Under the pieces are notes generated by a model, which worked only from the letters and a program-made list of their open reading frames with translations, was not told the origin of the DNA and ran no database searches. DNA of 64,000 nt from Macrostomum lignano (taxonomy: Eukaryota), in assembly GCA_002269645.1 (NCBI GenBank), contig NIVC01000586.1, positions 1-64,000 on the forward strand, read 5' to 3'. The first letter of the stretch is position 1. Each line of letters opens with the position of its first letter. Made by a program: the position numbers and the translations under genes. Positions 5,869 to 45,917 of this stretch are shown here, one piece after another.

Positions 5869-6461
5869 GCTCAAATCGTTTCTTTGATATATGCGTCTGT
5901 GAGGCCTTCCTGAGGGTTGCTAGTTGCATTCCAGTCATGACTGAGCCGCTAATGCTTATATAGAGTTCTTCTAGACTGCCCTGCTTTGCCCGGGAATTCC
6001 GCGGGCGCGCTCGGGCACTCCAAACTAATAATCTGACGAACACTGCCAAATACGGTCTACGGGAGTTCCCTGCGTATTCTATTTTTAGACATTTCGCACT
6101 GGGGCGTGTTACGTGGCCAGTGTACGCCTCCAGTGCCACAAGCTTTTACTAAGGATGTCCACGTAGTGTCGTAGTCAGACAATTAAAAACTTTGTTTTGC
6201 CATGTTTGCGCTTCATCATTGCCCTCTTGCCCATGAAAAACACTTGCTAGTACGGACTGACACGGATGACAGATTTTATGAGAAACTAATTTCGATTTTA
6301 CGTAAATTGTTGTTGAAAAATAATAAGCTAGCATTTCCTGGAAAACTTAGACATTTTACTCGCCGTATTCTCACGATCTCATGGGTCATTTGTTCTGTAC
6401 GTTTAATTACTAACTGAAATCCGCTCACTATTTCAAAGCGTTAGTCCGTATACCTGCCTAT

Positions 6462-6579
6462 GTCGTCTGTCTGTCTTAGTGTCTGTCTTAGTGTCTGCCT
6501 GTCTGTCTGTCTTAGTGTCTGTCTGTCTGTCTGTCTTAGTGTCTGTCTGTCTTAGTGTCTGTCTGTCTGTCTGTCTGCG

Positions 6580-6650
<71 letters not shown>
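6462..6650. repeat. (GTCT)n microsatellite with TTAG interruptions; left flank of the TIR element
   Basis: Directly visible. Confidence 0.97.
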
Positions 6651-7935
6651 GTTAATGTCTGTGTGTTTACTTGGACCTTTCGTCAGTATTTTTCCCTCCT
6701 TACATGGACCACCCGTTTTAACTGGACCCCTTACGTGGACCACCATATATATTTCTACATGAAAGGTTAAAGATGTTTTACATAGACCTATGATGGAGTC
6801 TAGCAGAAAACGATCGTGGTCCCTAAAGTTGCTCACTCGAAGTTCTTTTGGTTCCAAGTTACAACGGTTTCAGTTTACCTGGACCTTTTACTCGGTCCAC
6901 CTAAACCGATTTTCGAGGTCCACGTAAATCGAAATTTCACATGACCCATTTTCAAAAACTGTCTGTTTGGTGTCTGTTTTGTGTCTGTTAGGTAAATTGG
7001 TAGCTAAATTTGTCGATTTGTTGTAATCGTGAAAACGTTGTTTTTTGCGATAAAATAACAAATTTGTAAGCAACAATATGTATAATGGATTTGGGGCTTG
7101 GACGACAAAGACGGAACTATTATATGCTATTAATTTCGAGACAATTTTTATAAAAAATCACGATATTGCATCACAGCATTGAGTCTCCTCTCCACCTTGA
7201 GCTACTAAAAATTCCTCTAAGATCGCAATTGTAAGTGATGCAACTGGCCACCCGTGCTGCAGGGAATGATGTATTTACACAATCACACACTATGAAGTAA
7301 TGATTGATAACAGGCTGTTTCGTACGAGCTATGTACGACCTGTATCTTATTATGTCAAAGCCAAAACGAAAGCCATATTTGTATCGCTATCTTTGAAAGT
7401 CGTAGCTTATCCTAACATTAAAGTGCCTTTAACCAAATTCATTGGACGGAAAATCCGGAGTACATCGTGTGATTGGACTGTAAGCCGCTCTTATACTTAA
7501 AGGAGCCTCACACTCCTTGAAAGATAGCGGCCTCCAGTGGTTCCCCTAAAACGATGTCCTGTAGCACAGACTAATCTCTACCCCCTTATTTTAGCATGAC
7601 TGCTTGTCTCATTGTACACAGCAATGTACACTAGTTGTTTGCTTTTTATTAAAACAGCTGATGTCGGGAGATAAGAATTCTAGAATTTTCTGTTTCAAGA
7701 CTGTACAGTGCGAATGGACACTGGCCAACCAGTGGGGTATCTCAATGGGCACTGTACATTTGCCAGCCACAGAATCTCGCTAACCAATAGGAAAAGGTCT
7801 AATGAAATTGGCGTGGGGTTGCTTGCTTATAGAAGCCTCGCAATCAGGTCCATTTAAACCCAGACTTACTAAGACCAGAGTTTATTTAGGCCCCGTTGCA
7901 ATTGCAACTGCAAGTATAGGAAGAATATCCTGTAG

Positions 7936-10900
7936 AAAACGGCCAAAATATTTTACGTCGAAAGGATTGAGAAGTGCTGCAAAAAGAAGTTTTTTATAAA
8001 GTGGACTGGCTATCCCAGGTAAGAAAATTTTCAAAAAAGAATAACTTCTAATTCTAAATAATATTTTACTTAACTTGTAAAAAATTTAAGGCTTTACTGC
8101 TTTTCATTTTTAACATGCTTTGTAGGAGTAAAAACACATGGGAGCCGAAAAAATATCCCCGAGAACATCCTAAACGCTCTGCACTCTGAGTGCGGTAAGC
8201 TATACTCTACAGTCAATATCAATAGCATACAATAGGACATTTGCATCAACAACTTATACAGTATTACATTATTTTATACATTTCAGGCAAGTGCTTCACT
8301 AGAACAAAAGCTAAGGACAAGTCAGTAAGTTTTGTTGTAACGTGTTATTAAAATTTTTGATTTTGCGCTTTACTTAAACTATGAACAAATATTGTGGACA
8401 CAATTCTCCTTTATGTTTTTCTTTGATTCGAAATTCCTATACAGCTACAAAATAATTAGCTTTACATGACCTAAACAGCTGAACTACTACAACCATTTCT
8501 TCTACGCTTCATACTCGTACTTCAAAGTAAACAAACAGTAATTGATTAGGGTCCAGCTAACACACCTTGTAAACAACAGACAGACACAGTTAAGATAGTG
8601 CCCCGATCTGGGGTCCAGCTAACACACCGTGACACCAACAGACAGATGCAGTCAGTTTAAGATGGTGCCCCGATCTGGGGTCCAGCTAACACACCGTGAC
8701 ACCAACAGACAGACGCAGTCAGTTTAAGATGGTGCCCAGATCTGGGGTCCAGCTAACACACCGTGACACCAACAGACAGACGCAGTCAGTTTAAGATGGT
8801 GCCCCGACCTGGGGTCCAGCTAACACACCGTGACACCAACAGACAGACGCAGTCAGTTTAAGATGGTGCCCCGACCTGGGGTCCAGCCAACACACCGTGA
8901 CACCAACAGACAGACGCAGTCAGTTTAAGATGGTGCCCAGATCTGGGGTCCAGCTAACACACCGTGACACCAACAGACAGACGCAGTCAGTTTAAGATGG
9001 TGCCCAGATCTGGGGTCCAGCTAACACACCGTGACACCAACAGACAGACGCAGTCAGTTTAAGATGGTGCCCAGATCTGGGGTCCAGCTAACACACCGTG
9101 ACACCAACAGACAGACGCAGTCAGTTTAAGATGGTGCCCAGATCTGGGGTCCAGCTAACACACCGTGACACCAACAGACAGACGCAGTCAGTTTAAGATG
9201 GTGCCCCGACCTGGGGTCCAGCTAACACACCGTGACACCAACAGACAGACGCAGTCAGTTTAAGATGGTGCCCAGATCTGGGGTCCAGCTAACACACCGT
9301 GACACCAACAGACAGACGCAGTCAGTTTAAGATGGTGCCCAGATCTGGGGTCCAGCTAACACACCGTGACACCAACAGACAGATGCAGTCAGTTTAAGAT
9401 GGTGCCCCGATCTGGGGTCCAGCTAACACACCGTGACACCAACAGACAGACGCAGTCAGTTTAAGATGGTGCCCCGACCTGGGGTCCAGCTAACACACCG
9501 TGACACCAACAGACAGACGCAGTCAGTTTAAGATGGTGCCCAGATCTGGGGTCCAGCTAACACACCGTGACACCAACAGACAGACGCAGTCAGTTTAAGA
9601 TGGTGCCCAGATCTGGGGTCCAGCTAACACACCGTGACACCAACAGACAGACGCAGTCAGTTTAAGATGGTGCCCCGACCTGGGGTCCAGCTAACACACC
9701 GTGACACCAACAGACAGACGCAGTCAGTTTAAGATGGTGCCCAGATCTGGGGTCCAGCTAACACACCGTGACACCAACAGACAGACGCAGTCAGTTTAAG
9801 ATGGTGCCCAGATCTGGGGTCCAGCTAACACACCGTGACACCAACAGACAGACGCAGTCAGTTTAAGATGGTGCCCCGACCTGGGGTCCAGCTAACACAC
9901 CGTGACACCAACAGACAGACGCAGTCAGTTTAAGATGGTGCCCCGACCTGGGGTCCAGCTAACACACCGTGACACCAACAGACAGACGCAGTCAGTTTAA
10001 GATGGTGCCCCGACCTGGGGTCCAGCTAACACACCGTGACACCAACAGACAGACGCAGTCAGTTTAAGATGGTGCCCCGATCTGGGGTCCAGCTAACACA
10101 CCGTGACACCAACAGACAGACGCAGTCAGTTTAAGATGGTGCCCCGATCTGGGGTCCAGCTAACACACCATGACGTGAGACTGAAAACTAGATACAGACA
10201 CTAAAAGTCTAGCCAACTTACAAAATATTAGTTTCCAATTAGAGCTTTCGTTTTAACGGAAGGAATTTTTAATATACACACCAAGCAGCAAGACTCAACC
10301 AGTCAGTCTTCTCAGCTGCAACAAGACTTGGCCAGTCAGCAGAAGCAGCAACAGAACCCGGCCACTCAGTCTCCTCAGCCGCATCAAGACACGGCCAGTC
10401 AGCAGAAGCCGCATCAAAACTCGGCCAGTCACTCTCCTCAGCTGCTGCAGAACTCGGCCAATAAGTCAAAGAAGCAACGTCGCTCGACCAGTCAGCAGAA
10501 GCCGCATCAAGACTCGGCCAGTCAGCAGAAGCCGCATCAAGACTCGGCCAGTCAGCAGAAGCGGCATCAAGACTCGGCCAGTTTTTCTCCAGAGCAGCAC
10601 GAATCGGCCAAGAGAGCTCGAAACAAGTCCAGATCGGTTAAGAGGAAAGGAAGCAAGCAGTCCCGATGTGAAAGTGCTGACTCGTGTGAAGCTGGCTCCT
10701 CTCATCAAGCCGCTGCTAAAGGCACCTCTTCTGCTGTAAGTACTTTGTTGCGCTGCACTTTTACGCCTTTGTTCAAAACTGCACTGCAACTCGCACAATT
10801 GAATCTTCTATTAGTGTTTGAATTTAAAGAAGACAGTCTTAGATTTTGCTCTTATCTAAGGTCCAGCTAACACACCGTGACACCAACAGACAGACGCAGT

Positions 10901-13900
10901 CAGTTTAAGATGGTGCCCCGACCTGGGGTCCAGCTAACACACCGTGACACCAACAGACAGACGCAGTCAGTTTAAGATGGTGCCCCGACCTGGGGTCCAG
11001 CTAACACACCGTGACACCAACAGACAGACGCAGTCAGTTTAAGATGGTGCCCAGATCTGGGGTCCAGCTAACACACCGTGACACCAACAGACAGACGCAG
11101 TCAGTTTAAGATGGTGCCCAGATCTGGGGTCCAGCTAACACACCGTGACACCAACAGACAGACGCAGTCAGTTTAAGATGGTGCCCCGACCTGGGGTCCA
11201 GCTAACACACCGTGACACCAACAGACAGACGCAGTCAGTTTAAGATGGTGCCCAGATCTGGGGTCCAGCTAACACACCGTGACACCAACAGACAGACGCA
11301 GTCAGTTTAAGATGGTGCCCAGATCTGGGGTCCAGCTAACACACCGTGACACCAACAGACAGACGCAGTCAGTTTAAGATGGTGCCCAGATCTGGGGTCC
11401 AGCTAACACACCGTGACACCAACAGACAGACGCAGTCAGTTTAAGATGGTGCCCCGACCTGGGGTCCAGCTAACACACCGTGACACCAACAGACAGACGC
11501 AGTCAGTTTAAGATGGTGCCCCGACCTGGGGTCCAGCTAACACACCGTGACACCAACAGACAGACGCAGTCAGTTTAAGATGGTGCCCCGACCTGGGGTC
11601 CAGCTAACACACCGTGACACCAACAGACAGACGCAGTCAGTTTAAGATGGTGCCCCGACCTGGGGTCCAGCTAACACACCGTGACACCAACAGACAGACG
11701 CAGTCAGTTTAAGATGGTGCCCCGATCTGGGGTCCAGCTAACACACCGTGACACCAACAGACAGACGCAGTCAGTTTAAGATGGTGCCCCGATCTGGGGT
11801 CCAGCTAACACACCATGACGTGAGACTGAAAACTAGATACAGACACTAAAAGTCTAGCCAACTTACAAAATATTAGTTTCCAATTAGAGCTTTCGTTTTA
11901 ACGGAAGGAATTTTTAATATACACACCAAGCAGCAAGACTCAACCAGTCAGTCTTCTCAGCTGCAACAAGACTTGGCCAGTCAGCAGAAGCAGCAACAGA
12001 ACCCGGCCACTCAGTCTCCTCAGCCGCATCAAGACACGGCCAGTCAGCAGAAGCCGCATCAAAACTCGGCCAGTCACTCTCCTCAGCTGCTGCAGAACTC
12101 GGCCAATAAGTCAAAGAAGCAACGTCGCTCGACCAGTCAGCAGAAGCCGCATCAAGACTCGGCCAGTCAGCAGAAGCCGCATCAAGACTCGGCCAGTCAG
12201 CAGAAGCGGCATCAAGACTCGGCCAGTTTTTCTCCAGAGCAGCACGAATCGGCCAAGAGAGCTCGAAACAAGTCCAGATCGGTTAAGAGGAAAGGAAGCA
12301 AGCAGTCCCGATGTGAAAGTGCTGACTCGTGTGAAGCTGGCTCCTCTCATCAAGCCGCTGCTAAAGGCACCTCTTCTGCTGTAAGTACTTTGTTGCGCTG
12401 CACTTTTACGCCTTTGTTCAAAACTGCACTGCAACTCGCACAATTGAATCTTCTATTAGTGTTTGAATTTAAAGAAGACAGTCTTAGATTTTGCTCTTAT
12501 CTAAGGTCCAGCTAACACACCGTGACACCAACAGACAGACGCAGTCAGTTTAAGATGGTGCCCCGACCTGGGTCCAGCTAACACACCGTGACACCAACAG
12601 ACAGACGCAGTCAGTTTAAGATGGTGCCCCGACCTGGGGTCCAGCTAACACACCGTGACACCAACAGACAGACGCAGTCAGTTTAAGATGGTGCCCAGAT
12701 CTGGGGTCCAGCTAACACACCGTGACACCAACAGACAGACGCAGTCAGTTTAAGATGGTGCCCAGATCTGGGGTCCAGCTAACACACCGTGACACCAACA
12801 GACAGACGCAGTCAGTTTAAGATGGTGCCCCGACCTGGGGTCCAGCTAACACACCGTGACACCAACAGACAGACGCAGTCAGTTTAAGATGGTGCCCAGA
12901 TCTGGGGTCCAGCTAACACACCGTGACACCAACAGACAGACGCAGTCAGTTTAAGATGGTGCCCAGATCTGGGGTCCAGCTAACACACCGTGACACCAAC
13001 AGACAGACGCAGTCAGTTTAAGATGGTGCCCAGATCTGGGTCCAGCTAACACACAGTGACACCAACAGACAGACGCAGTCAGTTTAAGATGGTGCCCCGA
13101 CCTGGGGTCCAGCTAACACACCGTGACACCAACAGACAGACGCAGTCAGTTTAAGATGGTGCCCCGACCTGGGGTCCAGCTAACACACCGTGACACCAAC
13201 AGACAGACGCAGTCAGTTTAAGATGGTGCCCCGACCTGGGGTCCAGCTAACACACCGTGACACCAACAGACAGACGCAGTCAGTTTAAGATGGTGCCCCG
13301 ACCTGGGGTCCAGCTAACACACCGTGACACCAACAGACAGACGCAGTCAGTTTAAGATGGTGCCCCGATCTGGGGTCCAGCTAACACACCGTGACACCAA
13401 CAGACAGACGCAGTCAGTTTAAGATGGTGCCCCGATCTGGGGTCCAGCTAACACACCATGACGTGAGACTGAAAACTAGATACAGACACTAAAAGTCTAG
13501 CCAACTTACAAAATATTAGTTTCCAATTAGAGCTTTCGTTTTAACGGAAGGAATTTTTAATATACACACCAAGCAGCAAGACTCAACCAGTCAGTCTTCT
13601 CAGCTGCAACAAGACTTGGCCAGTCAGCAGAAGCAGCAACAGAACCCGGCCACTCAGTCTCCTCAGCCGCATCAAGACACGGCCAGTCAGCAGAAGCCGC
13701 ATCAAAACTCGGCCAGTCACTCTCCTCAGCTGCTGCAGAACTCGGCCAATAAGTCAAAGAAGCAACGTCGCTCGACCAGTCAGCAGAAGCCGCATCAAGA
13801 CTCGGCCAGTCAGCAGAAGCCGCATCAAGACTCGGCCAGTCAGCAGAAGCGGCATCAAGACTCGGCCAGTTTTTCTCCAGAGCAGCACGAATCGGCCAAG

Positions 13901-15908
13901 AGAGCTCGAAACAAGTCCAGATCGGTTAAGAGGAAAGGAAGCAAGCAGTCCCGATGTGAAAGTGCTGACTCGTGTGAAGCTGGCTCCTCTCATCAAGCCG
14001 CTGCTAAAGGCACCTCTTCTGCTGTAAGTACTTTGTTGCGCTGCACTTTTACGCCTTTGTTCAAAACTGCACTGCAACTCGCACAATTGAATCTTCTATT
14101 AGTGTTTGAATTTAAAGAAGACAGTCTTAGATTTTGCTCTTATCTAAGGTCCAGCTAACACACCGTGACACCAACAGACAGACGCAGTCAGTTTAAGATG
14201 GTGCCCCGACCTGGGGTCCAGCTAACACACCGTGACACCAACAGACAGACGCAGTCAGTTTAAGATGGTGCCCAGATCTGGGGTCCAGCTAACACACCGT
14301 GACACCAACAGACAGACGCAGTCAGTTTAAGATGGTGCCCAGATCTGGGGTCCAGCTAACACACCGTGACACCAACAGACAGACGCAGTCAGTTTAAGAT
14401 GGTGCCCAGATCTGGGGTCCAGCTAACACACCGTGACACCAACAGACAGACGCAGTCAGTTTAAGATGGTGCCCCGACCTGGGGTCCAGCTAACACACCG
14501 TGACACCAACAGACAGACGCAGTCAGTTTAAGATGGTGCCCAGATCTGGGGTCCAGCTAACACACCGTGACACCAACAGACAGACGCAGTTAGTTTAAGA
14601 TGGTGCCCAGATCTGGGGTCCAGCTAACACACCGTGACACCAACAGACAGACGCAGTCAGTTTAAGATGGTGCCCAGATCTGGGGTCCAGCTAACACACC
14701 GTGACACCAACAGACAGACGCAGTCAGTTTAAGATGGTGCCCAGATCTGGGGTCCAGCTAACACACCGTGACACCAACAGACAGACGCAGTCAGTTTAAG
14801 ATGGTGCCCCGACCTGGGGTCCAGCTAACACACCGTGACACCAACAGACAGACGCAGTCAGTTTAAGATGGTGCCCTGATCTGGGGTCCAGCTTATAAGC
14901 TCTCATTCTCAGACTCTCTTAAGGTCCGATATTCCGCGAGTTCTGATTATCTCTTTTAAATAAATTGAAATGTAGTGCCTGTGAATAGTATAAGAATGTT
15001 TCCCTTTTGTTTTGCTTTATATGTTTTTAGTGGTACTTACATTTTAGGCAGTCGACAGCAGAAACGAGTTTTCAACGAATTGGTTCCAAGACAAAAAGTT
15101 TTTTTTCGCATATCCAAAGGCTTTTAACCGTGATCGGCTATGTGAAGAAGGCGTGTAGTATTTTGGTGGCACTATTGCTTCGTTTTTTTCAAATCAGGTA
15201 AGTGACTTTAGTATTTGTTGTTGTCGAAGTTAGTTTTGGTAGTAAACGTTGAGTTGTTTTTTAATTCTATTGTTGGTATCAATTTAAGTGAGCGCATTCG
15301 AGCGTATCTTTTAACGCTTCTTAATCCTAATGATAGAACAATTTGATTGCATTTTCCTGAACTTTATACAAAGCATTTTATGTAATTTAATTAATTTCAT
15401 AGGTGGACTTCGTCGTCTCAATTTCAACACCTGCGAACTGTTCGGAAATGTCCATTTCGAACATATTCGAACATACATATCGGCAACAGTGGAGTTGCCA
15501 CGGGGATGTGCGATGCAAAAAATGGCTACCGCAGCCAGTGCATACTCTGGCTTTTGCTCTGCCGATGACGATGTTGCAAAAACAAGGCTCCTCGGAATTC
15601 CAAATATCAGTCTACAAGGGGTTCGAGACTGTTTACGTGACCGCGGCTATATTGCAAGTCGAGCCGACTCAGCTAATGCGGCAGGATCATTTGCATTAAG
15701 TCACGGCAAAATCCTGTCTGGAACAGCAGTTGTTATTGGGGATGCAAGCCGACGGCGTGGACCAATTTTTTCTGAAAATCTACAAGTGTTCGACTATTTT
15801 ACTAATCCGGATTTATACGACCTTCGAGAATCCGAGGAGCAGGATCAACGAATCCGGCAAAAGATTTCAATGTTTTGTGTTTCTTTAAAATTGTTTCCTT
15901 TACGTTAA
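7936..15908 (+). pseudogene. Spliced, lesioned gene inside the TIR element: chromodomain, Q/S-rich exon (x3), Dbf4-like BRCT (motif N) and motif-M-like segment
   Basis: Exons 7936-8018 and 8126-8194 give IFYVERIEKCCKKKFFIKWTGYPRSKNTWEP (chromodomain; frameshift in the A6 run at 8148-8153). Further exons: 8287-8324; 10289-10735 with copies at 11934-12380 and 13577-14023; 15048-15197; 15403-15908. The last two give WFQDKKFFF...RLCEEGV*YFGGTIASFFSNQVDFVVS, then after a frameshift PRGCAMQKMA...AKTRLLGIPNIS and LSGTAVVIGDASRRRGPIF. Splice sites are canonical and phases consistent once the lesions are allowed. Confidence 0.6.
8550..14892. repeat. 67-bp tandem array (~60 copies) organised as a 1645/1643-bp higher-order repeat with three copies of a 690-bp insert
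   Basis: Unit ggggtccagctaacacaccgtgacaccaacagacagacgcagtcagtttaagatggtgccc(a/c)ga(t/c)ct. Inserts start at 10170, 11815 and 13458. Confidence 0.97.
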
Positions 15909-16231
15909 ATCGATTATTTCCAATTGCCTCCGTCTGTGTTTAACCTTAGCTGTCAGTGTTAGGTTTTCGCTAAATTTGGTCTATGATTTTGAATCGGTGT
16001 GGAGGTTCACCTAAAACACGTTCTGTCGGTGTCCATATAAACCAGTCCAGTTTAAGTAATAAAAATGCTGGTGCAGTTTCCACTAATGAGAGCCTCTGTC
16101 AGCTTCAAAAATAAACAAACTTTTGAAGATCTTTCGTGAACTAAAAAAAGGCTCTATTAAAAGTAAAAGAGTCGGTGGTCCATGTAATGCATTAAAACTT
16201 CTGAGGTCCAGCTAAACACACAGACACTTGT

Positions 16232-16435
<204 letters not shown>

Positions 16436-17376: not shown

Positions 17377-20300
17377 ATGGAGAGTTGGCTGCCCCTGCTG
17401 CTAGCTGCATTGGCCTCGGCTCCTCCCGTCAGCGAGTCAGTCGGCCAGCAGTTCTCGGTGACCGGCGGGCTGTGCAGCGCCACCGACGATCCGCTCGCGA
17501 CGCTTTCGGCGGCGGACAGTGGCGTCGAGTGCGCGGGAGAGTGCGCCGGAACTCCGGGCTGTCTCGCCTGCAGTGGAAACGGCAGCAGCTGGCGGCTGGT
17601 GCGCAACGCCTCAGTCGGGCTGACTTCCGGGAACTGCCGGATCGTGGCCAAGTCCAACATCCCAAATGGTGAGAGTTTAGCTGAAGCTCCTGGGCTCTAT
17701 CGTGTAAGTCCTCCCCCCCTGTCCACTTTCAGCAGGCGGTCTGATCACTCGAAAAGTTGCAGTCCGCAGTCAAAGTTTTGGACAATGACCAAGAATGTGA
17801 TTCTCACATTTGCGCCATGCAGCCTTGACCAATTTTTTTGTAAAAAGTGGTAGGAAAGTCTTGATTAAGCCATCAAAACATATGATTGCCTGCGATCACT
17901 ACGATCAGATCTCTGCGCCACAAACGAAACGCTCGAGGCGCCCTTCCTGGCTTTGAACTCGACCGGAGATGCGGTGCTTCTCATCGAACTGCTCTGCTCT
18001 CGCTGGTGCAGGCGTCTCGCGTCTGATGGCTCGCTGTTCGCCCCAATCGGCGCCGCTGTCAGCGCCACGCAGCCCGGAAAAGCCCTGATCCGCTGCTCGC
18101 CGCTAACGACCTCCGATTACTTCTCAAGTTCGACCGCTGACTTCTCTCTGCTCTCCGTGTCGGTCCGCTGGCGCGACCAGTTCACCAACGAGACCTTGTG
18201 CAGCAGCGCCGCGGCCAGCGGCAATGTCCCGCCTGCGGTCCACCTGGCCTGGTCTCAGCCTCATCGGCTGGACATCTGCGCCCAGGCTTGCGCTTGGCGT
18301 CCGACCTGCGAGTTCTTCGTTTTCAACGCCTCCGGCTGCTTTGAGGGCTCCCTCAGCCTCTACCTGAGCAGCCGTCTCCAGGGAATCCACGGCTGCAGCA
18401 TGTGGCACAAGACGCGCACCTGGGCCTCGTCTATGCTCGCCTTCTACGCCTTCAACTCAAGCATGCTGAACCTCGCCAGCCCGGCCATCATGCCGGCCTT
18501 GAACAACTCGCCGGTGGACATCGGGCCCGAGGGCGTCCTGATTCCGCTGAACACGGCGCAGTTCGTGCGGCTCAACCTGTCGCATATCGGCTTCGACTCG
18601 CTCGTCAGGTGAGCTTGAACTGGAGCTGCGATTTCTGAGTTCGACTTTTGTATTTCAAAGCAAGCAAACCCAGCAAACCCCAGCAAATTTGTTCAGATTA
18701 ATGCACAAATTTGGATTAATGCACTAGATTAATCAAGGATTATTGCTATTAATAAACCAAGGATTACTGCACTTGATTAATCAAGGATTATTGCTATTAA
18801 TAAACCAAGGATTACTGCACTTGGAAAACCAAGGATTACTGCACTCGAGAAGCCAAGGATTATTGCTATTAATAAACCAAGGATTACTGCACTCGATAGC
18901 CAAGGATTACTGCGCTTGATAAGCTTGGCTACATGTAAAGGATTATTTCTATCTAGGGATGCTTGCTATGTGCAGGATGCTTGCTATCTGGAAGGATGCT
19001 TCTACGTTATTTGGGGGATGCTTGCTATCTGGGTGGATGCTTTTATCCGGGGGATGTTTCTATTTGGGGGATGCTTGCTATCTGGGTGGATGCTTTTATC
19101 CGGGGGATGTTTCTATTTGGGGGATGCTTGCTATCTGGGTGGATGCTTTTATCCGGGGGATGTTTCTATTTGGGGGATGCTTGCTATCTGGGTGGATGCT
19201 TTTATCCGGGGATGTTTCTATTTGGGGGATGCTTGCTATCTGGGTGGATGCTTTTATCCGGGGGATGTTTCTATTTGGGGGATGCTTGCTATCTGGGTGG
19301 ATGCTTTTATCCGGGGATGTTTCTATTTGGGGGATGCTTGCTATCTGGGTGGATGCTTTTATCCGGGGGATGTTTCTATTTGGGGATGCTTGCTATCTGG
19401 GTGGATGCTTTTATCCGGGGGATGTTTCTATTTGGGGGATGCTTGCTATCTGGGTGGATGCTTTTATCCGGGGGATGTTTCTATTTGGGGGATGCTTGCT
19501 ATCTGGGTGGATGCTTTTATCCGGGGATGTTTCTATTTGGGGGATGCTTGCTATCTGGGTGGATGCTTTTATCCGGGGGATGTTTCTATTTGGGGATGCT
19601 TGCTATCTGGGTGGATGCTTTTATCCGGGGGATGTTTCTATTTGGGGGATGCTTGCTATCTGGGTGGATGCTTTTATCCGGGGGATGCTTCTATTTGGGG
19701 GATGCTTGCTATCTGCAGATGCTTGCTATCTGGGTGGATGCTTGCTAGGAGTATTAGGGGATGCTTGCTATTTGCGGTTGTTTACTTTTGGAGGAGGGTG
19801 CTTGCTACTGGGGGATGCTTGCTGTCTTGGGAATATTTTCTATTTAGGGGTAATGACTGTGATCTTTGTGAAAGCTATATTTTCCTGTCTGTTTGTTAAT
19901 TTTAGAAAAAAAGAGATTCATAGCAAATATTATTGTCCATGACAATTTTAAATGAATAAGGTGATTTTTAAAAGTGATGAAGGACTTGGTTTTTAAGAAA
20001 ATGTGCTTTTTCATTGATTTCCATAAACTATTTTTGCTTCGTTCTTATTAGGCGCCCCGAAGGGGGGCCGCACTAGATTGCTAGTTGTCTTTTCTAAAAC
20101 TTTGTCTCGACAAACGTTAACCTTGAGTAATGAGGAAGTTCAAATCGCAAGTATTTATATGTCTTCAGTAGAAGTCGGGAACCCATTGCTAAATTTATTT
20201 CAGGGCCAACACCTCGTTCACCTTCGTGATCACGTTTAGTCGAGGCCTGCCAAAAAGCCGCTCCGAGCTGGTCCTGTTTTCCAGCTGCTCAGACATCACT

Positions 20301-20672
20301 CAATACAACGGCGCCATCAACGAGCAGTCCTCGAGGAACGAGGGCTGGTTCCTGAACTCCCTCACAGGCCATTGGCAAGTCGCCAAGTCCCTCAGCCCGG
20401 GTTCAACCATGGACTATCCCAACAGCTCAGCGATTCACCTGGCCATGGCTCTGGGCCCGACATCCGGCTACTTCGTGGTGAACGGAGTGAAGCTGGACAC
20501 GAACTTCTACACGGCTCCCAGCACCTACGGCACCGACCCGGTTAAGATTGGCTGCATGTTCCTGGGCATGATGTACTTCAACCCCCCGAGCAGGATTCTG
20601 CATGGCAGAATCAGGAATCTGGCCATCTTCACTAAGATGCTGTCCGTCGAAGAGGTCATGGAGTTGGTGTGA
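17377..20672 (+). CDS. Secreted protein with PAN/Apple-like Cys motifs and a C-terminal LamG/concanavalin-A-like (pentraxin-like) domain
   Basis: Exons 17377-17668, 17909-18608 and 20204-20672 (phases 1, 2). Signal peptide MESWLPLLLAALASA. PAN-like motifs VECAGECAGTPGC and ICAQACAWRPTCEFFVF. LamG_3-type ending HLAMAL...FVVNG...LHGRIRNLAIFTKMLSVEEV. AATAAA at ~20758. Confidence 0.8.
18955..19760. repeat. 53-bp intronic minisatellite built from three ~18-bp GGATG-initiated subunits
   Basis: Period 53 (19021 to 19074), with occasional 52-bp copies. Preceded by degenerate ccaaggattactgcact repeats at ~18720-18920. Confidence 0.95.
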
Positions 20673-21904
20673 CCCAAGGCTGACTTGAGGACAAAGCAAC
20701 GCTGTGATGAGCGAAAAGCAGTGAATAATACAAACTGAAAATGAAATTATTTCTCCGGAATAAATGTTTTTAATTATCGGCGCAGAATTGCTGGCATTCG
20801 AGCAGATTGTTTCCCGGATTTCCTGATTTTGTCATTTTTGTTTACGGATAGGCAAAAGCTATCAGAAAGGGCAGCAAGAACTGCTCACCCGGACTCCGCT
20901 TAGCCAATAAAAGGCACAGGTGGAAGCAGAGCTGAAATTTGATATTTAGGACTACAGTATAACATTATAGTATTATGCTTTTGCGCCCTCAAATTTCAAC
21001 ATTGATTACTTAGCCAAATTCTATAGTGATAAGAGTGTCATTAACTTAATCAGAGACAATGTTCGGGACTGGCTGGGTTTTGAGCAAGGAATGTCTATGG
21101 TCAAGTCTGTTTTATATTCGCTGATGGGTCGAGTTGAGTCAAATGATCTGCTTACTGACTTCCCGAGACTGCTGAGCTCAAGCAATCTGTCTAACCAAAT
21201 GGTCTCGGGCTTATCAACAGAATTAGAGTTGGAGTTGGTTACTTTTGAATCAGCAATTGTTTCTTATGTACTCTACGTTCGTTCAATGCTTGTTTACAAA
21301 AGTGCAACTCCTTCATTGAACTGAACACAGATTGATGTTCAGTTGACTATAATCTAATGGACCATAGACTATGGAACGTTTGAGATTCAATGATTTCAAT
21401 GAGCTCAAAAAATCAATAGCAGTCTATGGCCGAAATACTAACTTTCTTGTCCTTTTCGTCTGTGTCTATGTCTTGTTGGCAAAACCAAATCTACGACACG
21501 AGATTACCAAATCTACCAAATTTAATGCCAAAAATCGCGTACTGCTGCCAAATGAGAATTCTCAACTTAGTTGGCTTAACCACCAACTTGGCCCAGGAGT
21601 CAGCCTCCTGCTACTTCGGGTGTTCAATTTTCAATGTTGCTTAGTCTTGCCGTGTTGACTGTATACTGAATCAAAGCGCTCGCAGTCTTGTGGCCATAGA
21701 CAATATTTGAGGGCCCGATGCTATCTTTGGCTATCTTATCTTGTTTTTCAAACTTCGTTTTCACACGCCTCGGGCCATAGACAAAAGAGATTGGCGGGCT
21801 ATCAGCACAGGGAGACAGACGACTTGAAGAGTGCGAGCCAAATGCCACCCTGAATGTCAACTGCTATCTTGCTAAGCTACGTTAAATAATTTCAAAAAAT
21901 AAGA

Positions 21905-24900
21905 ATGAATATTCGCCTGCATTCAATGACTCTGCTAATTCTGCTCGTGGCTGTCTGTTGGCCTCACCAAGCCTTCGGGGCGTATCGCTGCTTGAACAAA
22001 AATGCAACACTGTATCGAAGCGCCCTCTACGCTCGACCGTCGAAATATGAGCTTCGTCTGAATGACAACGAATGTATGGCCAGTGTGGTGCTGGGCGATT
22101 GGTGCCACTGGGAGCCCGTGGACACTGGCCACGGAGTCACCACCTGCCAGAAGGGCCTTAACATTCGATGGCGAAGACGTCAATGCAACTGCCCGCCACC
22201 GAAGCCGCTGTACAGTCACAAGACTTGGTGCATGCCGCCCTGGAACACCAGCTCGGTTGCCACGCTTCTCAATGCCACCTTGACACGACTGGAGGCGCTG
22301 AAGCCCGCCGTCTGGAACGATGCCAAGCTGTGGCGCCTCAATCGGCCTTTCAGTCGGCCAGGATCCCTGACCAACTCGCTACTGGCCTGCATGCGGATGG
22401 ATGTGAGCTCATCCATGGACTGCTAATCTAGCCTATGGGATTGCTAATCTAGCCCATGGGATTGCTAATCTAGCCTATGGGATTGCTAATCTAGCCTATG
22501 GGATTGCTAATCTAGCCTATGGTATTGCTAATTTAGCCTATGGGATTGCTGGATTGCTAATCTAGCCTATGGGATTGCTAATCTAGCCTATGGGATTGCT
22601 GGATTGCTAATCTAGCCTATGGGATTGCTAATCTAGCCTACGGGATTGCTGGATTGCTAATCTAGCCTATGGGATTGCTAATCTAGCCTATGGGATTGCT
22701 GGATTGCTAATCAAGCCTATGAGATTGCTAGTCTAGCCAATGGGATTGCTAATCTAGCCTATGGGATTGCTAATCTAGCCTATGGGATTGCTAATCTAGC
22801 CTATGGTATTGCTAATTTAGCCTATGGGATTGCTGGATTGCTAATCTAGCCTATGGGATTGCTAATCTAGCCTATGGGATTGCTAATCTAGCCTATGGGA
22901 TTGCTAATCTAGCCTATAGGAAGACTCATTAGAGGAATGCTAATCCATATCACCCAAATCCCGTTGCCAAGCCAGGATTCGGACTGCTTCTTCCACACTG
23001 GGGCAATGTACACGGGCACTGTTCACCACGTCCGGAGTGGCAAGCCGTGCCTGCATTGGTCCTCGTTCCAGACTGAGCTGGTCAGCATGGGGCTGACCAA
23101 GTCTAAGTTAAGGCTTTTTCTGGCCACCAATCCGCGGAATTATTGTAGAAACCCGCTGTCAGAGCTGGAGCACACAATGTTCGCTAACTCCCGCCTGAAG
23201 CCGTGGTGCTTTGTGAACAAAATTTCTTATGAAATGCGTATGCTGTGGGACTATTGCGAGATCAAACGCTGCGGCTCTTCGCACTACCACGGCATCGTGG
23301 TCTTTGACCCGAACAGATTTAACCACATCCGGTTCAGAGGGATGACCAAGTCCACGACTCACTCGCCCACCAACACCATTAACCCGGATCCTTCTGGAGA
23401 CATGAATGCCGAGGCCTGCTTTGAGACCTGCCGATTCCGCTGTGAAAAGTTTGCCCGTGAGTCTGCTCAGATGCTGTTTAGATATTGTTTCGATGTCACA
23501 TAGACGTCGCTCAGATGCTGTTTAGATGTCGCTCAGATGCTGTTTAGATGTCGCTCAGATGCTGTTTAGATGTCGCTCAGATGCTGTTTAGATGTCGCTC
23601 AGATGCTGTTTAGATGTCGCTCAGATGCTGTTTAGATGTCGCTCAGATGCTGTTTAGATATTGTCTCAATGTCACATAGACGTCGCTTAGCTGCTTTTTA
23701 GATGTCGCTCAGATGCTGTTTAGATATTGTTTCGATGTCACATAGACGTCGCTTAGCTGCTGTTTAGATGTCGCTCAGATGCTGTTTAGATATTGTTTCG
23801 ATGTCACATAGACGTCGCTTAGCTGCTGTTTAGATGTCGCTCAGATGCTGTTTTAAGATGAGAGAGGTTATTGACTTGAGCAGTAAGCTCAGCTGGCAAG
23901 CTTCCAGAAAGGAAGGCAGCGTCTGTCTTATGCAGCTGCCGTCTCTTCAATGTGTTGACCAGTCATCCGCTCCGCACTCCCACCGCAGTGATGAATTTAC
24001 GCAGGCACACTCCGCCACTCCCACCGCAGTGATGAATTTACGCAGGTACACTCCGCACTCCCACCGCAGTGATGAGTTTACGCAGGCACACTCCGCCACT
24101 CCCACCGCAGTGATGAATTTACGCAGGCACACTCCGCCACTCTCACCGCAGTGATGAGTTTACGCAGGCACACTCCGCCACTCCCACCGCAGTGATGAAT
24201 TTACGCAGGCACACTCCGCACTCCCACCGCAGTGATGAATTTACGCAGGCACACTCCGCACTCCCACCGCAGTGATGAATTTACGCAGGCACACTCCCAC
24301 TCGCAACCTGCGGGCCTGCCAGTGCTTCAACGAGTCGGAGATTCCGGACCCAGCCGCCGACTTCAAGGGCCGCTACATCGACAACTTGCCGGTAATGTTC
24401 GATCACAGGGTCTACCTGTATTACAATATATACTTCAAGTATCATCAATCGGATGGTCCATTTCGATACCTTAAATGGGAGCCGTGCCTTTTGTTCGACA
24501 CCATGTTTCGCTGCCCTCTCGTGAACATAGATGGCGCGCCAGAACTATTTACCACCGTCTTCGAGATCGCATTGCCCAAGAACTGCTATGAAGCCAACAG
24601 AATGATCCACTGGGAACAGCTCGACACCATGACAATCTTTGGCGCGATGGGAAACTTTCGGTAAGATGGAGGGGAATATAGAATGCACGACCTTGAGACA
24701 GGAGCGAATCCAGAGTTGGACAGAAGTTAATCCGACAGAACGTTTGACCTTGGGAAATATGGGGAATCCGACAAAATGTTTGACCTTGAAAAATATGGTG
24801 AATCCAACAGAATGTTTGACCTTAAGAAATACGGGGAATCCAACAGAATTTTCGACCTTGAGAAATATGGGGAATCCAACAGAATGTTCGACTTGAGAAA

Positions 24901-27900
24901 TATGGGGAATCCAACAGAATGTTCGACCTTGAGAAATATGGTGAATCCAACAGAATGTTTGACCTTAAGAAATACGGGGAATCCAACAGAATTTTCGACC
25001 TTGAGAAATATGGGGAATCCAACAGAATGTTTGACCTTGGGAAATATGGGGAATCCGACAAAATGTTTGACCTTGAAAAATATGGGGAATCCAACAGAAT
25101 GTTTGACCTTAAGAAATACGGGGAATCCAACAGAATTTTCGACCTTGAGAAATATGGGGAATCCAACAGAATGTTTGACCTTGAAAAATATGGGGAATCC
25201 AACAGAATGTTCGACTTGAGAAATATGGGGAATCCAACAGAATGTTCGACCTTGAGAAATATGGGTAATCCAACAAAATGTTTGAACTTGAGAAATATGG
25301 GGAATCCGACAGAACGTTCGACCTTGAAAAATATGGGGAATCCAATAAATGCACGACCTTGAGACAGGGGAATCCAGGGCGCACCGCATTTGCTAAGTTG
25401 GAGTGATAAATTTTCAACCTGTGAGCAGCTAACCAGGCAGCAACCATTTGCTCACTCAACCACTGGCAGGCAAGTGGCGTCAATAAACCAGGTCACCAGC
25501 AAAGTGCTGATGTCCAGCAGGAATTCGCACTCCAGGTTTCTCAACACGCTGTGCACTCATCAAACTACCGCTTTTACGTATTGCCCCCCCTTCGAGGCCG
25601 AATCATTGCTTGACCCGAATTCCTACTTCAATAACGTTGTTGACGAGGATTTTCAGTGGATTATCTTCGACATTGGCAGCCACAAGCACATCTCCCTGCT
25701 CAAGCTCTTCATCAATCGAATGGATTTGAGCGCCATGCGCTTCTTGGAGGTTTTCGTTCGCGGCGCTCCGCTGCCACACTGGCTGGTGGAGACCGACTTC
25801 CGCAGCAGCGACGGCGAGAAGGGACGGCGAACCGAATACTTCAGGAGGGCCACCATGGCCGAAAAAATGCTCTGGTGGCACTGCGAGGATCTCAAATTTC
25901 ATCACGGTGTGGTGAGATATCACAGGGGCTTGGATTAGTGAGTGAGGATTCGTGAGTGACTTCTTGAGTGACTTCATGAGAGAGCTCATGAGTGAGTTCA
26001 TGAGTGAGTTCATGAGTGAGTTCATGAGTGAGTTCATGAGTGAGTTCATGAGTGAGTTCATGAGTGAATTCATGAGTGAGTTTATGAGTGAGTTCATGAG
26101 TGAGGGTTAATGAGTGAGTTCATGAGTGAGGGTTAATGAGTGAGTTCATGAGTGAGCTCATGAGTGAGTTCATGAGTGAGGGTTCATGAGTGAGGGTTCA
26201 TGAGTGAGTTCATGAGTGAGCTCATGAGTGAGTTCATGAGTGAATTCATGAGTGAGTTTATGAGTGAGTTCATGAGTGAGGGTTAATGAGTGAGTTCATG
26301 AGTGAGTTCATGAGTGACTTCATGAGTGAGTTCATGAGTGACTTCATGAGTGAGTTCATGAGTGACTTCATGAGTGAGTTCATGAGTGACTTCATGAGTG
26401 AGTTCATGAGTGACTTCATGAGTGACTTCATGAGTGACTTCATGAGTGAGTTCAGGAGTGACTTCATGAGTGAGTTCATGAGTGAGTTCATGAGTGACTT
26501 CATGAGTGAGTTCTTGAGTGAGTTCATGAGTGAGTTCTTGAGCGGAGTGAGGGTTTATGAGTGAGATCATGAGTGAGTTCCTGAGTCAGTTCATGAGTGA
26601 GGGTTTATGAGTGAATTCATGAGTGAGTTAATGAGTGAGGTCATGAGTGAGTTCATGAGTGAGTTCATGAGTGAGGGTTCATGAGTGAGTTCCTGAGTCA
26701 GTTCATGAGTGAGGGTTCATGAGTGAATTCATGAGTGAGTTAATGAGTGAGGTCATGAGTGAGGTCATGAGTGAGTTCTTGGGTCAGTTCCTGAGTCAGT
26801 TCATGAGTGAGGATTTATGAGTGGATTCATGAGTGAGTTCATGAGTGAGGGTTCATGAGTGAGTTCATGAGTGACTTCATGAGTGAGTTCATGAGTGATT
26901 TCGTGAGTGAGTTCTTGAGTGAGTTCTTGAGTGAGTTCATGAGTGGGGGTTTAAGAGTGAGTTCATGAGTGAGTTCTTGAGTAGAGTGAGGGTTTATGAG
27001 TGAGATCATGAGTGAGATCATGAGTGAGATCATGAGTGAGTTCATGAGTGAGTTCATGAGTGAGTTCATGAGTGAGTTCATGAGTGAGTTCATGAGTGAG
27101 ATCATGAGTGAGTTCATGAGTGAGATCATGAGTGAGATCATGAGTGAGATCATGAGTGAGATCATGAGTGAGATCATGAGTGAGTTCATGAGTGAGTTCA
27201 TGAGTGAGTTCATGAGTGAGTTCATGAGTGAGTTCATGAGTGAGATCATGAGTGAGTTCATGAGTGAGATCATGAGTGAGTTCATGAGTGAGATCATGAG
27301 TGAGATCATGAGTGAGATCATGAGTGAGATCATGAGTGAGTTCATGAGTGAGATCATGAGTGAGTTCATGAGTGAGTTCATGAGTGAGTTCATGAGTGAG
27401 TTCATGAGTGAGTTCATGAGTGAGATCATGAGTGAGATCATGAGTGAGTTCATGAGTGAGTTCATGAGTGAGTTCATGAGTGAGATCATGAGTGAGATCA
27501 TGAGTGAGTTCATGAGTGAGTTCATGAGTGACCGAGGGCCCCGCGCCGCCTCCTCCCGCAGTCGTACATCTATTCCGAGTGCTGTCCCCACCAGCGCACT
27601 CGCTGGGTGATGATCCGAATGAAGGTCAACTCTGATTTGCTGGAGATGAAGTACATGATGGGCTTCGACTGGCTAAAGTTCCCCGAAATTAGCCGCATCT
27701 TAGTGACGAATCTGCAAGTATTCGAAACCTCGCTGGACATGATGAACTGCCTGACCATGCACCACCCTCCCATGGGCCCAGAGAACGCCGACTACTGGGA
27801 GGATTTGTACAGCTTTGACGGAAGTGTGAGCAGAGTGCCATCACTCCACAAGTTATAGAATTTTCACTCCATAAATGTCACTCGGCAACTGTCAGTCCGA

Positions 27901-30513: not shown

Positions 30514-36189
<5,676 letters not shown>

Positions 36190-41480: not shown

Positions 41481-41829
<349 letters not shown>

Positions 41830-44800
41830 CTTGACTTAGCTGCAGGGCTGTCCCGGAGGGGACACAGCGGGAAGGCGCGGGCGCCCATTCCGCTAGTCCC
41901 TGAACGGCCGACGCGTCGCTATGGACGGAGGGTTGGCGCCGCCCAGGGAGGTCCCCCAGTGTCGCTAGCAGCTATGGTGCTCTCTGGAAAGGAGAGTTCA
42001 GCCCTGCGGGTGGCCCGAAGGTAGCGCATGAGCTGATTAAAGTTTTCGGGTTTGCACGCTTCAGTAATAGATGTGTGTGGCCCGAGGTAAGTGAGTCTGG
42101 CCCGCGTGAAGGCGGGACAGATGCTGACGAAATGCTCAGCGGTTTCGTCACCTGAGTTGCAGAAACTACAGGTGGCGTTGGTGGCGTTGCCCTGCAGGTA
42201 CTGGTGCCTGGAGAAGCAGCCGTGACCAGAGAGGGTCATGGTGGCAGCCCGGATGTCTCTGCGCGAGAGGCGCAAGAGGAGCTTCCGGAGCTGGTGAGAG
42301 GGCTGAGGGACAGCGCCTCTGGATTGCCTGCAGTTCGTGCGGTTCGCCCAAGTCGAGCGGTGCTGAGTCCTGATCCACGCTTTGATGCGCGAGTCGATGA
42401 CACAGCCAGGAATCGGGACAAGAGGTTCGGGGCCGAGAGAGGAGCCGGAGGCACCAACTTTTGCAAGGGTGTCAGCCAACTCATTTCCTCGGATCCCCAC
42501 ATGCCCCGGAACCCACTTAAGGGTAATTTTGTTGGCGGAACCCAACACATTGAGGAGTTTGATACAGTCAAGGACTGTAGCAGAGTTGGTGCTGCAGCCA
42601 CTGATGGCGTGCAAGGCAGCTTGGCTGTCCGAATGGAAAATGATGTTCTTATCAGTAACGCCAGTGGCGAGAAGCTCTGCAGTGCAGGAGCTGATGGCCA
42701 GAACTTCATTTTGGAAAACACTGGAGTTGACCCCAGTGTATTGAGCGTGGGTAGCGATGACCCTCCCGTTCAGAAAGATTCCAACACCAAAGCCGGTGTT
42801 GGCTGACTGCTTAGAACCGTCGGTGTAGCAATGAAGCTCACCAGGGTTCCAATGGTCATTGATGTTATCGCGCGAGTCGATAGCTACGGAGTAGCGCTGT
42901 CTCAGGTTGAGCGTTGAGGCAATGCCATCGGTGAAGACGCGATTGGCCTGACACTCGTTGAGAAAGTTGAGGCACAGGTGCTCTAGCAGGTGCTCTCATG
43001 TAAATGAATTTGACGCCGGCATCAATTAGACGCCGCGTCGTTCTAGCCGCCTCACCCCTGATGAAGAGGTCAAGAGGCGGAAGATTAAGGAAGGCCCCCA
43101 TGCCAGCAAAGGGCGTGGACCTGGTGGCGTTGCAGATGAGCCTACACGCTCTGCCTTGGATCGTGTTGAGCAGGTCTGCATGGCTTTTGACCTGGGTAGC
43201 GCTAACCCAGACAACAGAGGCGTACGTAATGGCAGGTCTAACTACGGAAGTATAGATCCACCAAAGCCGCTTTGGGGATAGACCCCAAGAAGTGCCAAGT
43301 GCTCGTCGGAGCTGGGCCAGGATGGCTGAGGCACGCTTGGCTTTTGCTTTCACGTGGAAGGACCAGTTGAGCCGGTGGTCAAGTGTGACCCCGAGACATC
43401 TGGTCTGGTGCGCGAAGGCAATATCTCTGCCGTAGAGCTGCAGAGGACGTATGTTCCAGCGTAGTCTGCTGGTAAACATAATGGCAACGGTTTTGGGCTC
43501 AGAGAGTTCAAGACCATTGTCATTGGCCCAGGATTCTGCTTTGCGGATAAAGCTCTGCATCAGATCCCTGAGCGTGCTGGGAGACGGTCCTGCCACAATG
43601 GCCGTGACGTCATCAGCATACCCGACTTTGAAGACGGGGTCGGGTCGGGAGTCACTCAAAAGAGCGTCCATGACCAGGTTCCAGAGCGTCGGGGTGAGGA
43701 CTCCGCCTTGGGGTCCACCCTTACAGACTCTGGTGGAGGCAGTTTGCCCAAGAAGTTGGGCAGTGACCGTACGGTTGGAGATCATGTACATGATCCACCG
43801 TATGAGGGTAGCATGAGCTTTGCGATTTTGAAGGGCCCTCTGAAACGCTTCAAAGATAACGTTGTCGAAGGCGCCAACAATGTCAAGAAAGAGAGCCAGA
43901 GCGTAACCGTCACCCAGTACCGCCCTTTCAATCTTCTCGACAATCGCATGCAGGGCGCTGTCAGTCGACCTCCCGGTGCGGAAGGCGTGCTGATTATTGC
44001 TGAGGGGCATCGCTGTCAGCTCGCAGGACAGCAGCCGCCAGAGAATAAGCCTCTCAGTGAGCTTAAGCATTGCTGACGTTAAGCTAATAGGCCGGAAGGC
44101 CTTGACGCTTTGGTAGTCACCCATCCCAGGTTTGGGAATAAAGACTACCCGAGCTTCAGTCCAGAATTTGGGAACGTATCCCAGCTGGATAGAGGCCCGC
44201 ATGAGATTGCGGGTGAGTCTCAGGAACGAGGGTATCTTGGCTGCTTCACGAAGGAGAACAGGGTAGATACCATCAGGTCCAGGAGATTTGAAGGGTTTGA
44301 AGGTTCTGACCGCACGAGCGATTAGGTCTTCAGTGACAATGCCCGCCGCTAGGGTGGCTCCATCCATCGAATGGTTGGGCTCCGGTCTAGCAGTAGGTAC
44401 CCTCGGGAAGAATGTGCTAAGCATATGCTGAAGCACTTCTTCAGGGTCTTTAGTAAGAGAGCCATCATCTTTTTTGATCATGGCTAATTTGGACATTTTG
44501 TCCATTGTAAGGGCCTTGACAAGCCTAGAAGTAGGTCTGTCTTGATCCAATTCATTGCAGAATTGGCGCCACTTACATTCCTTGGCCTTGCGCACTTCAG
44601 ATTTGAAATTGCGGGAGGCTTGCCGGAAAAGCTCCATGTCCTCCGGGTTTCCGGTCTTCATGGCACGGCGATGAAGGCTTTTGGCCTTCCGCCTGAGTTT
44701 CCCCAGCTCCGGGTTCCACCACGGCGCCGAGGTCTTGCCTTTGTAGGCGCGAGCAGGACAAGCCGCTTCGTAGGCTTCAATAATGCAACCTGTCAGCGTC

Positions 44801-45259: not shown

Positions 45260-45917
<658 letters not shown>

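Follow-up and report, generated by a model that had tools for sequence, protein, structure and literature searches.

The window analysed here is a 64-kb stretch of Macrostomum lignano DNA (contig NIVC01000586.1). On its plus strand lie two exons that encode a chromodomain and, about 7 kb downstream, two exons that we regard, from sequence comparison, as derived from a Dbf4-type gene (Table 1). The two parts were probably once a single gene, and the copy in the window is a pseudogene. This gene is enclosed by a short pair of terminal inverted repeats (TIRs), and we lean slightly towards reading the interval 6657-16225 as a non-autonomous TIR DNA transposon that was inserted into a (TGTC)n microsatellite and carries the chimeric gene as cargo. 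The chromodomain and Dbf4-like halves were treated separately in the searches. All queries were taken from the unedited sequence, either as single exons or as exons joined over GT-AG introns, with an X in the place of a stop codon; frameshifts were never bridged.

Table 1. Positions of the features discussed in the text (numbering of the window; TRF, Tandem Repeats Finder; S/Q, serine/glutamine; NLS, nuclear localisation signal; LTR, long terminal repeat)
Feature	Position	Strand	Remarks
Putative chimeric gene, broken	7300..15908	+	ATG exon, chromodomain exons, basic exon, S/Q-rich exon (three times), Dbf4-like exons, stop
Proposed exon chain	7936-8018, 8126-8194, 8287-8324, 10286-10735, 15048-15197, 15403-15908	+	8287-8324 short and basic; 10286-10735 with 2 further identical copies
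Chromodomain-coding exons (two)	7936..8194	+	107-nt intron between them; Pfam Chromo
Dbf4-like region	15048..15908	+	BRCT-type motif N split by intron 15198-15402, then M-like block, stop codon
S/Q-rich, NLS-like exon of 450 nt, three copies	10286-10735, 11931-12380, 13574-14023	+	
(TGTC)n microsatellite, left flank (presumed target site)	6461..6650		TRF; ~90% identical, in direct orientation, to right-flank array
Left TIR	6657..6677	+	21-nt pattern
Left subterminal region	6672..6885	+	Five TGGACC repeats (6672, 6705, 6723, 6736, 6880)
67-bp satellite array, intronic	8549..10174	+	TRF: 24 copies, 97% matches
Higher-order repeat of 1645 bp, three copies	10175..14158	+	686-bp unique part and 67-bp satellite array in each
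67-bp satellite arrays within the higher-order repeat	10860-11819, 12505-13462		TRF
Last 67-bp satellite array, in the intron 5' of the Dbf4-like exons	14148..14893	+	TRF: 11 copies, 98% matches
Right subterminal repeats	16174..16210	-	GGTCCA on the plus strand, i.e. TGGACC inverted (16177, 16205)
Right TIR	16205..16225	-	
(TGTC)n microsatellite, right flank	16229..16435		TRF: 52 copies, 99% matches; orientation as in left flank
Non-LTR retrotransposon	41919-45261	-	Endonuclease, reverse transcriptase, RNase H

Chromodomain and Dbf4-like exons

Taken alone, the exon at 7936-8018 gave a weak match to the Pfam Chromo model (E = 0.042). When it was spliced to 8126-8194 and read up to the break, the score rose to 30.5 bits (E = 3.5e-7; gathering cut-off 25.1), and this gain upon splicing is itself evidence for the intron, which has a GTAAGA donor and a TGTAG acceptor. 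Among the matches listed for solved structures, there were chromodomain proteins only. HP1 leads (E = 2.4e-5), and the others are SUV39H1, Chp1, LHP1, CBX proteins, Rhino and CHD1. In the alignment with HP1, the W and the Y of a KW.GY cage motif find their counterparts; this alignment does not cover the first position of the cage. An earlier reading of the letters (the sequence-only reading) had described a chromodomain split over two exons, which these Pfam and structure matches bear out.

An exhaustive HMMER search with the open stretch of the last exon against 1.84 billion representative proteins returned only three matches (E = 5e-6, 5e-4 and 6e-4). All of them are from Macrostomum lignano: PAA77783.1 (Mlig017237) and the UniRef entries A0A1I8HXN8 and A0A1I8JFC0, one of the latter two being named 'DBF4-type domain-containing protein'. 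Immediately 3' of the matched region, two of the three carry the Pfam zf-DBF domain (E = 4e-12 and 6.5e-16), and all three have a weak N-terminal BRCT match below the Pfam cut-off. Searched against solved structures, a profile of the M. lignano homologues finds Dbf4 from yeast (1.4e-6) and DBF4A from human (5e-4), in both cases through the zinc finger. A tblastn search within the window gave two collinear matches inside the Dbf4-like region, with E values down to 7e-13 and 6e-7, the latter against the N-termini of the M. lignano proteins. One match covers the first half of the BRCT; the next takes in its second half and the conserved stretch that the homologues have just ahead of the zinc finger. 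With the open stretch of the last exon as query, a word-index search of proteins gave no relative, and scans of metagenome and viral contigs gave none either.

The BRCT itself is weakly matched in the window. Pfam gave no BRCT or Dbf4 match with the separate unspliced pieces, which are too short, and 16.5 bits (E = 0.01, below the Pfam cut-off) for BRCT with the spliced first half. An AlphaFold2 model of one M. lignano homologue (P0003), made from a four-row alignment, is poor, with a mean predicted local distance difference test (pLDDT) value of 42; its order of secondary structure elements is compatible with a BRCT fold. A further link comes from the gene structure. In the M. lignano gene on contig NIVC01000723.1 (locus L001), a phase-0 intron interrupts the BRCT after ...FFSKQ and before VD..., and the window intron at 15198-15402 lies after ...FFSNQ and before VD..., at the same codon and in the same phase. 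The common intron marks the window copy as a DNA-level paralogue of a Dbf4-type gene and not as a retrocopy. At the nucleotide level, the comparison of the window with L001 gave only a 43-nt retrotransposon-related match.

The block that follows the BRCT lies at the position of motif M and is conserved with the M. lignano zf-DBF proteins. It is on these two properties, read from the sequence, that the label M-like is based, and the motif M proposed in the sequence-only reading stands to this extent, but neither the window piece nor the three-sequence profile matched the Pfam motif-M model or Dbf4 structures. Motif C, the DBF zinc finger, was not detected anywhere in the 64 kb by tblastn with the zinc-finger-bearing homologues, and the reading frame stops where the zinc finger begins in these proteins; its absence had been noted before. 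Because the zinc finger is one of the defining features of Dbf4, we describe the 15-kb exons as Dbf4-derived and not as a member of the Dbf4 family. With this qualification, the Dbf4-type identity that had been proposed for them agrees with the HMMER and tblastn matches and with the common intron, while the profile evidence for 15048-15908 is limited to the sub-threshold BRCT match of the spliced exons.

A sirtuin identity had been considered for the first Dbf4-like exon, which on its own gave noise-level structure matches to SIRT2 (E = 0.056) and to the XRCC1 BRCT (E = 1). It was rejected: a longer query did not improve the SIRT2 match, which stood among unrelated matches such as plasmepsin, and true homologues were then found. 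An origin of the 15-kb exons from another family, be it a different BRCT protein or a sirtuin, is effectively refuted by the fact that the only significant relatives among the 1.84 billion proteins are the DBF4-type proteins of M. lignano, two of them with zf-DBF, collinear over both halves and with the intron in common.

Three breaks interrupt the copy in the window, as had been described: one frameshift in the chromodomain part, and a premature stop and a second frameshift in the Dbf4 part. We regard it as an inactive pseudogene. It is very improbable that the gene is instead intact and expressed and that the breaks are errors of sequencing or assembly. One frameshift does lie in a homopolymer run, as is typical of long-read errors, and the 100% identity of the 686-bp units within the repeats of the linker region may be a sign that the repeats were collapsed or polished during assembly. 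The premature stop, however, is a substitution at a well-aligned codon, the other frameshift is tied to a short tandem duplication and not to a homopolymer, and motif C is missing regardless of any error.

The DBF4-type proteins of M. lignano are the closest and the only detectable relatives of the window copy. Over the matched region, it is 43% and 32-33% identical to two M. lignano paralogues, which are 37% identical to each other. Since the two paralogues are as distant from one another as they are from the window copy, the latter represents a third, deep lineage and not a recent copy. It keeps 38 of the 57 columns in which the paralogues agree, and matches one or the other at 53 of the 114 columns in which they differ. 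By our rough estimate, 57% amino-acid divergence under neutrality would be accompanied by stops of the order of ten in ~200 codons, whereas one is seen in the Dbf4-like part. Together, the few breaks for this divergence and the preferential retention of residues conserved between the paralogues suggest that constraint acted on the lineage over most of its history and that the window copy was inactivated recently. Past constraint followed by recent death would mean that working relatives exist or have existed.

One gene or two fragments

All six exon types of the proposed gene are on the plus strand and have pyrimidine-rich YAG acceptors (Y = pyrimidine) and GTAAG donors. With every exon translated in the frame of its homology, the phases are compatible at every junction. 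The S/Q-rich linker exon is phase 0-0, as is the first BRCT exon; the linker is open over 150 codons and contains basic, NLS-like stretches. On the plus strand, GTAAG occurs 8 times in the unique DNA of the element (3.9 kb) as against 28 times in the whole 64 kb; five of the eight are exon ends, and a sixth (at 7480) closes, in phase 0, an open reading frame that starts with ATG. This frame of 60 codons (7300-7479) is a tentative first exon. It has no Pfam match, and it is in phase with the chromodomain exon, which likewise begins in phase 0.

Another possibility is that a spliced leader (SL) is joined to the acceptor at 7936. The spliced leader of M. lignano ends in ATG (PMC8629364); its sequence as given there is absent from the window. 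The M. lignano DBF4-type proteins begin 12-22 residues before the BRCT and have no initiator Met. At 9985-10180 of NIVC01000723.1, the gene is annotated as 5'-partial, with an in-frame stop and an AG acceptor just upstream and no ATG in the exon, which fits a start codon that comes from the spliced leader with its final ATG or from a further exon upstream that is not annotated.

Going by splice signals and phases, we think it reasonably probable that the chromodomain and Dbf4 parts once belonged to one gene. The peptide strings quoted in the sequence-only reading are indeed encoded at the positions and on the strand given there, and the single protein that it assembled from them is in line with the uniform donors and compatible phases, but no transcript, intact paralogue or second copy that carries both parts was found in the collections searched.

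The competing explanation is that two unrelated decayed fragments, an HP1-like chromodomain with its hinge and, 7 kb further downstream, a 5' piece of a Dbf4 paralogue, were never co-transcribed and agree in phase by coincidence. We consider this unlikely but well worth keeping in mind. Between the two parts lie 6.7 kb of mostly satellite DNA, and no transcript or paralogue that joins them was found. The Dbf4-type genes of M. lignano have no chromodomain, and nothing chromo-like was found within 10 kb upstream in L001. It is also general knowledge that Pack-MULEs and Helitrons can carry several unrelated gene fragments per element. Two independent fragments would not, however, be expected to lie on one strand with uniform GTAAG donors and a phase fit unbroken over four junctions, nor to have between them an S/Q-rich exon, phase 0-0, that is open over 150 codons. 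In addition, the satellites keep to the exon boundaries, and both parts contain few breaks in spite of their deep divergence, which fits one unit that was inactivated recently.

The proposed enclosing element, its satellites and its surroundings

A 21-nt TIR pattern, with two mismatches, has exactly two matches in the window, 6657-6677 and 16205-16225. They are in inverted orientation, and no such match is expected by chance. The element that they delimit spans 9.6 kb. The two ends share two collinear inverted matches, one of 21/23 and one of 14/14, the latter pairing the block at 6700-6713 with 16187-16174. The hexamer TGGACC is present in five copies within 230 nt of the left end and is found inverted at the right end. 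A (TGTC)n array, the same on both sides, directly abuts each end in one and the same orientation; this pattern is characteristic of insertion into a microsatellite. The inverted 21-nt pair and the inverted subterminal block agree with the earlier proposal that the gene lies inside a TIR element.

Apart from the cargo gene, the element has no long open reading frame and none of the size of a transposase, which is why we call it non-autonomous. Neither a further copy of the element nor a larger inverted repeat enclosing it was found in the 64-kb window.

The 67-bp satellite forms four arrays, which all lie in introns of the gene model and respect the exon boundaries. The head of its monomer equals 16 nt of the right terminus of the element (0 of 500 shuffles score as high). 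After these terminal 16 nt, the monomer continues with a (GACA)-like stretch that resembles the flank of the element. An end of the element, together with its microsatellite target, appears to have given rise to the arrays. Within the three units of the 1645-bp higher-order repeat, the 686-bp unique parts are 100% identical, and the three linker-exon copies that they contain are identical, all open and phase 0-0. The triplication is either a very recent product of unequal exchange between the arrays or an assembly artefact. In the former case, exchange between intronic satellite arrays would have triplicated the linker exon.

Several points weigh against the reading of the locus as a transposon with a chimeric gene. 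No target-site duplication could be recognised, and the element has no assignable superfamily; the few bases between array and TIR differ between the left and the right side. The TIR is also the head of the internal 67-bp monomer, so that the supposed TIRs could be inverted satellite fragments. For the cargo, the exons are joined by splice-signal and phase logic only, with a partly free choice of acceptors, and the collections searched (1.84 billion proteins; metagenome and viral contigs) yielded no transcript, intact paralogue or second element copy. The M-like block gave no match to the canonical motif M, and the frameshift in the homopolymer run could be an assembly error.

Some of these points would agree better with a host gene, i.e. 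a lineage-specific chromodomain-Dbf4 paralogue situated in satellite-rich DNA, in which case what look like TIRs would be pieces of the 67-bp satellite in inverted orientation. At its start, the monomer has the 16 nt of the right terminus, the whole window is packed with satellites, and there is neither a transposase nor a recognisable target-site duplication nor a second copy in the window. We nevertheless hold a host gene to be improbable, given that the ends share two collinear inverted matches (21/23 and 14/14), that TGGACC is clustered within 230 nt of the left end and inverted at the right, and that (TGTC)n directly abuts both ends in the same orientation, as expected for insertion into a microsatellite. 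A non-autonomous TIR transposon with a chimeric gene thus remains the reading to which we incline.

The surrounding window is metazoan DNA rich in repeats, with dozens of mini- and microsatellite arrays detected by TRF, and a search of all 64 kb against Rfam gave no match. Exons elsewhere in the window encode TRAF-MATH, PAN, laminin-G, Kringle and C2H2 domains. Just 3' of the element, at 17377-25400 on the plus strand, exons for a signal peptide and for PAN, laminin-G-like and Kringle domains suggest a multi-exon gene for a secreted protein; a word-index protein search with its PAN-domain exon gave no relative. An open reading frame at 33533-34735 encodes three C2H2 fingers; it then enters a tandem repeat with a 30-nt unit (33885-34562), so that its product goes on as a series of decapeptide repeats. 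The non-LTR retrotransposon is flanked by (AACT)n arrays on both sides (41481-41829 and 45260-45917). It is thus a second insertion embedded in a microsatellite within the window, and it may be a target-specific long interspersed nuclear element. Two further satellite blocks, 47070-52912 (23-bp unit, ~254 copies, with a strong skew of G over C) and 53556-55741 (21-bp unit, ~100 copies), together occupy more than 8 kb.

Possible origin and mode of action, and comparison with known systems

The fusion may have begun with a piece of a Dbf4 paralogue, from its 5' acceptor onwards, that was placed 3' of chromodomain and hinge exons and would then have been spliced to them in frame. As a fragment that begins at an acceptor can splice to any upstream exon with a donor, this would explain how the fusion arose. 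In a lineage with SL trans-splicing such as Macrostomum, many gene 5' ends are acceptor sites, so that upstream exons bearing a donor can create in-frame fusions, and the locus illustrates how domain combinations may arise under these conditions. Without a transposase of its own, the element would depend for any movement on an enzyme made elsewhere, which would recognise the inverted TGGACC subterminal repeats.

In an intact form of the protein, the chromodomain would bind chromatin marked by methyl-lysine, the basic hinge would give nuclear localisation, and the N and M surfaces of the Dbf4 part would bring or hold Cdc7 and BRCT partners. Motifs M and C of Dbf4 are needed together for full activation of Cdc7. 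An intact form without motif C would therefore more likely be a tether or decoy, which binds or sequesters Cdc7, than a full activator. The suggestion in the sequence-only reading that the product could bias insertion or local replication is not supported by any of these results; the copy is broken three times and has no zinc finger. We can only conjecture, and assign a low probability to it, that intact members of the source lineage encode a natural and possibly transposon-borne chromodomain-hinge-Dbf4(N+M) protein that reads methylation of the histone H3 lysine 9 type and holds Cdc7, as a tether or by sequestering it, on heterochromatin or satellite DNA. If such a protein existed, it would change when the local DNA is replicated or its copy number, or the chromatin in which the element itself lies.

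Of the families that the locus calls to mind, HP1 is represented by the best chromodomain matches, together with SUV39H1 and Chp1, by the aligned W and Y of KW.GY, and by the basic, serine-rich, hinge-like linker that follows the chromodomain. Unlike HP1, the window gene has no chromoshadow domain but the Dbf4 motif N and the M-like block in its place, and its chromodomain is a few residues shorter between the first two strands. With Dbf4, Dfp1, ASK and Chiffon, the regulatory subunits of Cdc7 in the Dbf4-dependent kinase (DDK), it has in common the N-terminal BRCT-type motif N and, where motif M would be expected, a conserved block, and the homology runs through M. lignano proteins with the family-defining DBF zinc finger. 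It differs from them in lacking motif C and a canonical match for the M-like block, in the chromodomain and S/Q-rich linker that precede the Dbf4 region, in its three breaks and in being, as we read the locus, borne by a transposon. The nearest of these genes, those of M. lignano itself, have the BRCT intron at the same position and in the same phase; they consist of two exons, contain the zinc finger and have no chromodomain.

Chromatin readers on mobile elements are familiar from the chromodomains of chromoviral (Ty3/Gypsy) integrases. The window chromodomain resembles them as a reader module on an apparent mobile element, but it is split by a spliceosomal intron and is joined to neither an integrase nor a transposase, none being encoded in the element. 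Closer in organisation are the products of Pack-MULE-type transduplication, non-autonomous TIR elements that carry gene fragments. Like these, the window element would be TIR-bounded, has no transposase, and contains an intron-bearing fragment of a cellular gene, which in such elements may form a chimeric reading frame. In contrast to them, the fragment is deeply diverged and not a recent copy, the nearest cellular genes being 33-43% identical. We would class the locus as a new combination of domains that a non-autonomous TIR transposon carries as cargo and that is seen in one pseudogene copy. If the mobile element did carry it, this would suggest that transposons can borrow replication-licensing adaptors besides chromatin readers. 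At present, one dead copy without a zinc finger is a lead and not evidence of a working system.

A connection between HP1 and DDK has precedents in fission yeast, where HP1 brings the Dbf4-dependent kinase to heterochromatin non-covalently (PMC5295031). The same source summarises the engineered tether of Hayashi et al. 2009, in which the chromodomain of Swi6 (HP1) was joined to Dfp1 and early heterochromatin replication was restored without Swi6; the artificial link can thus stand in for the non-covalent interaction. The statement in the sequence-only reading that no chromodomain-Dbf4 fusion has been described therefore holds for natural fusions, none of which was among the papers listed by our literature search, but not for engineered ones (PMC5295031). 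A natural gene that hard-wires the link between HP1 and DDK would show that evolution has explored this shortcut, and an intact fusion of the kind conjectured above would be the natural counterpart of the Swi6-chromodomain-Dfp1 tether. In both, a chromodomain would be covalently joined to a protein of the Dbf4 family or derived from it; the tether was made in the laboratory with a presumably functional Dfp1, whereas the version in the window is natural, inactive, probably carried by a transposon and without motif C.

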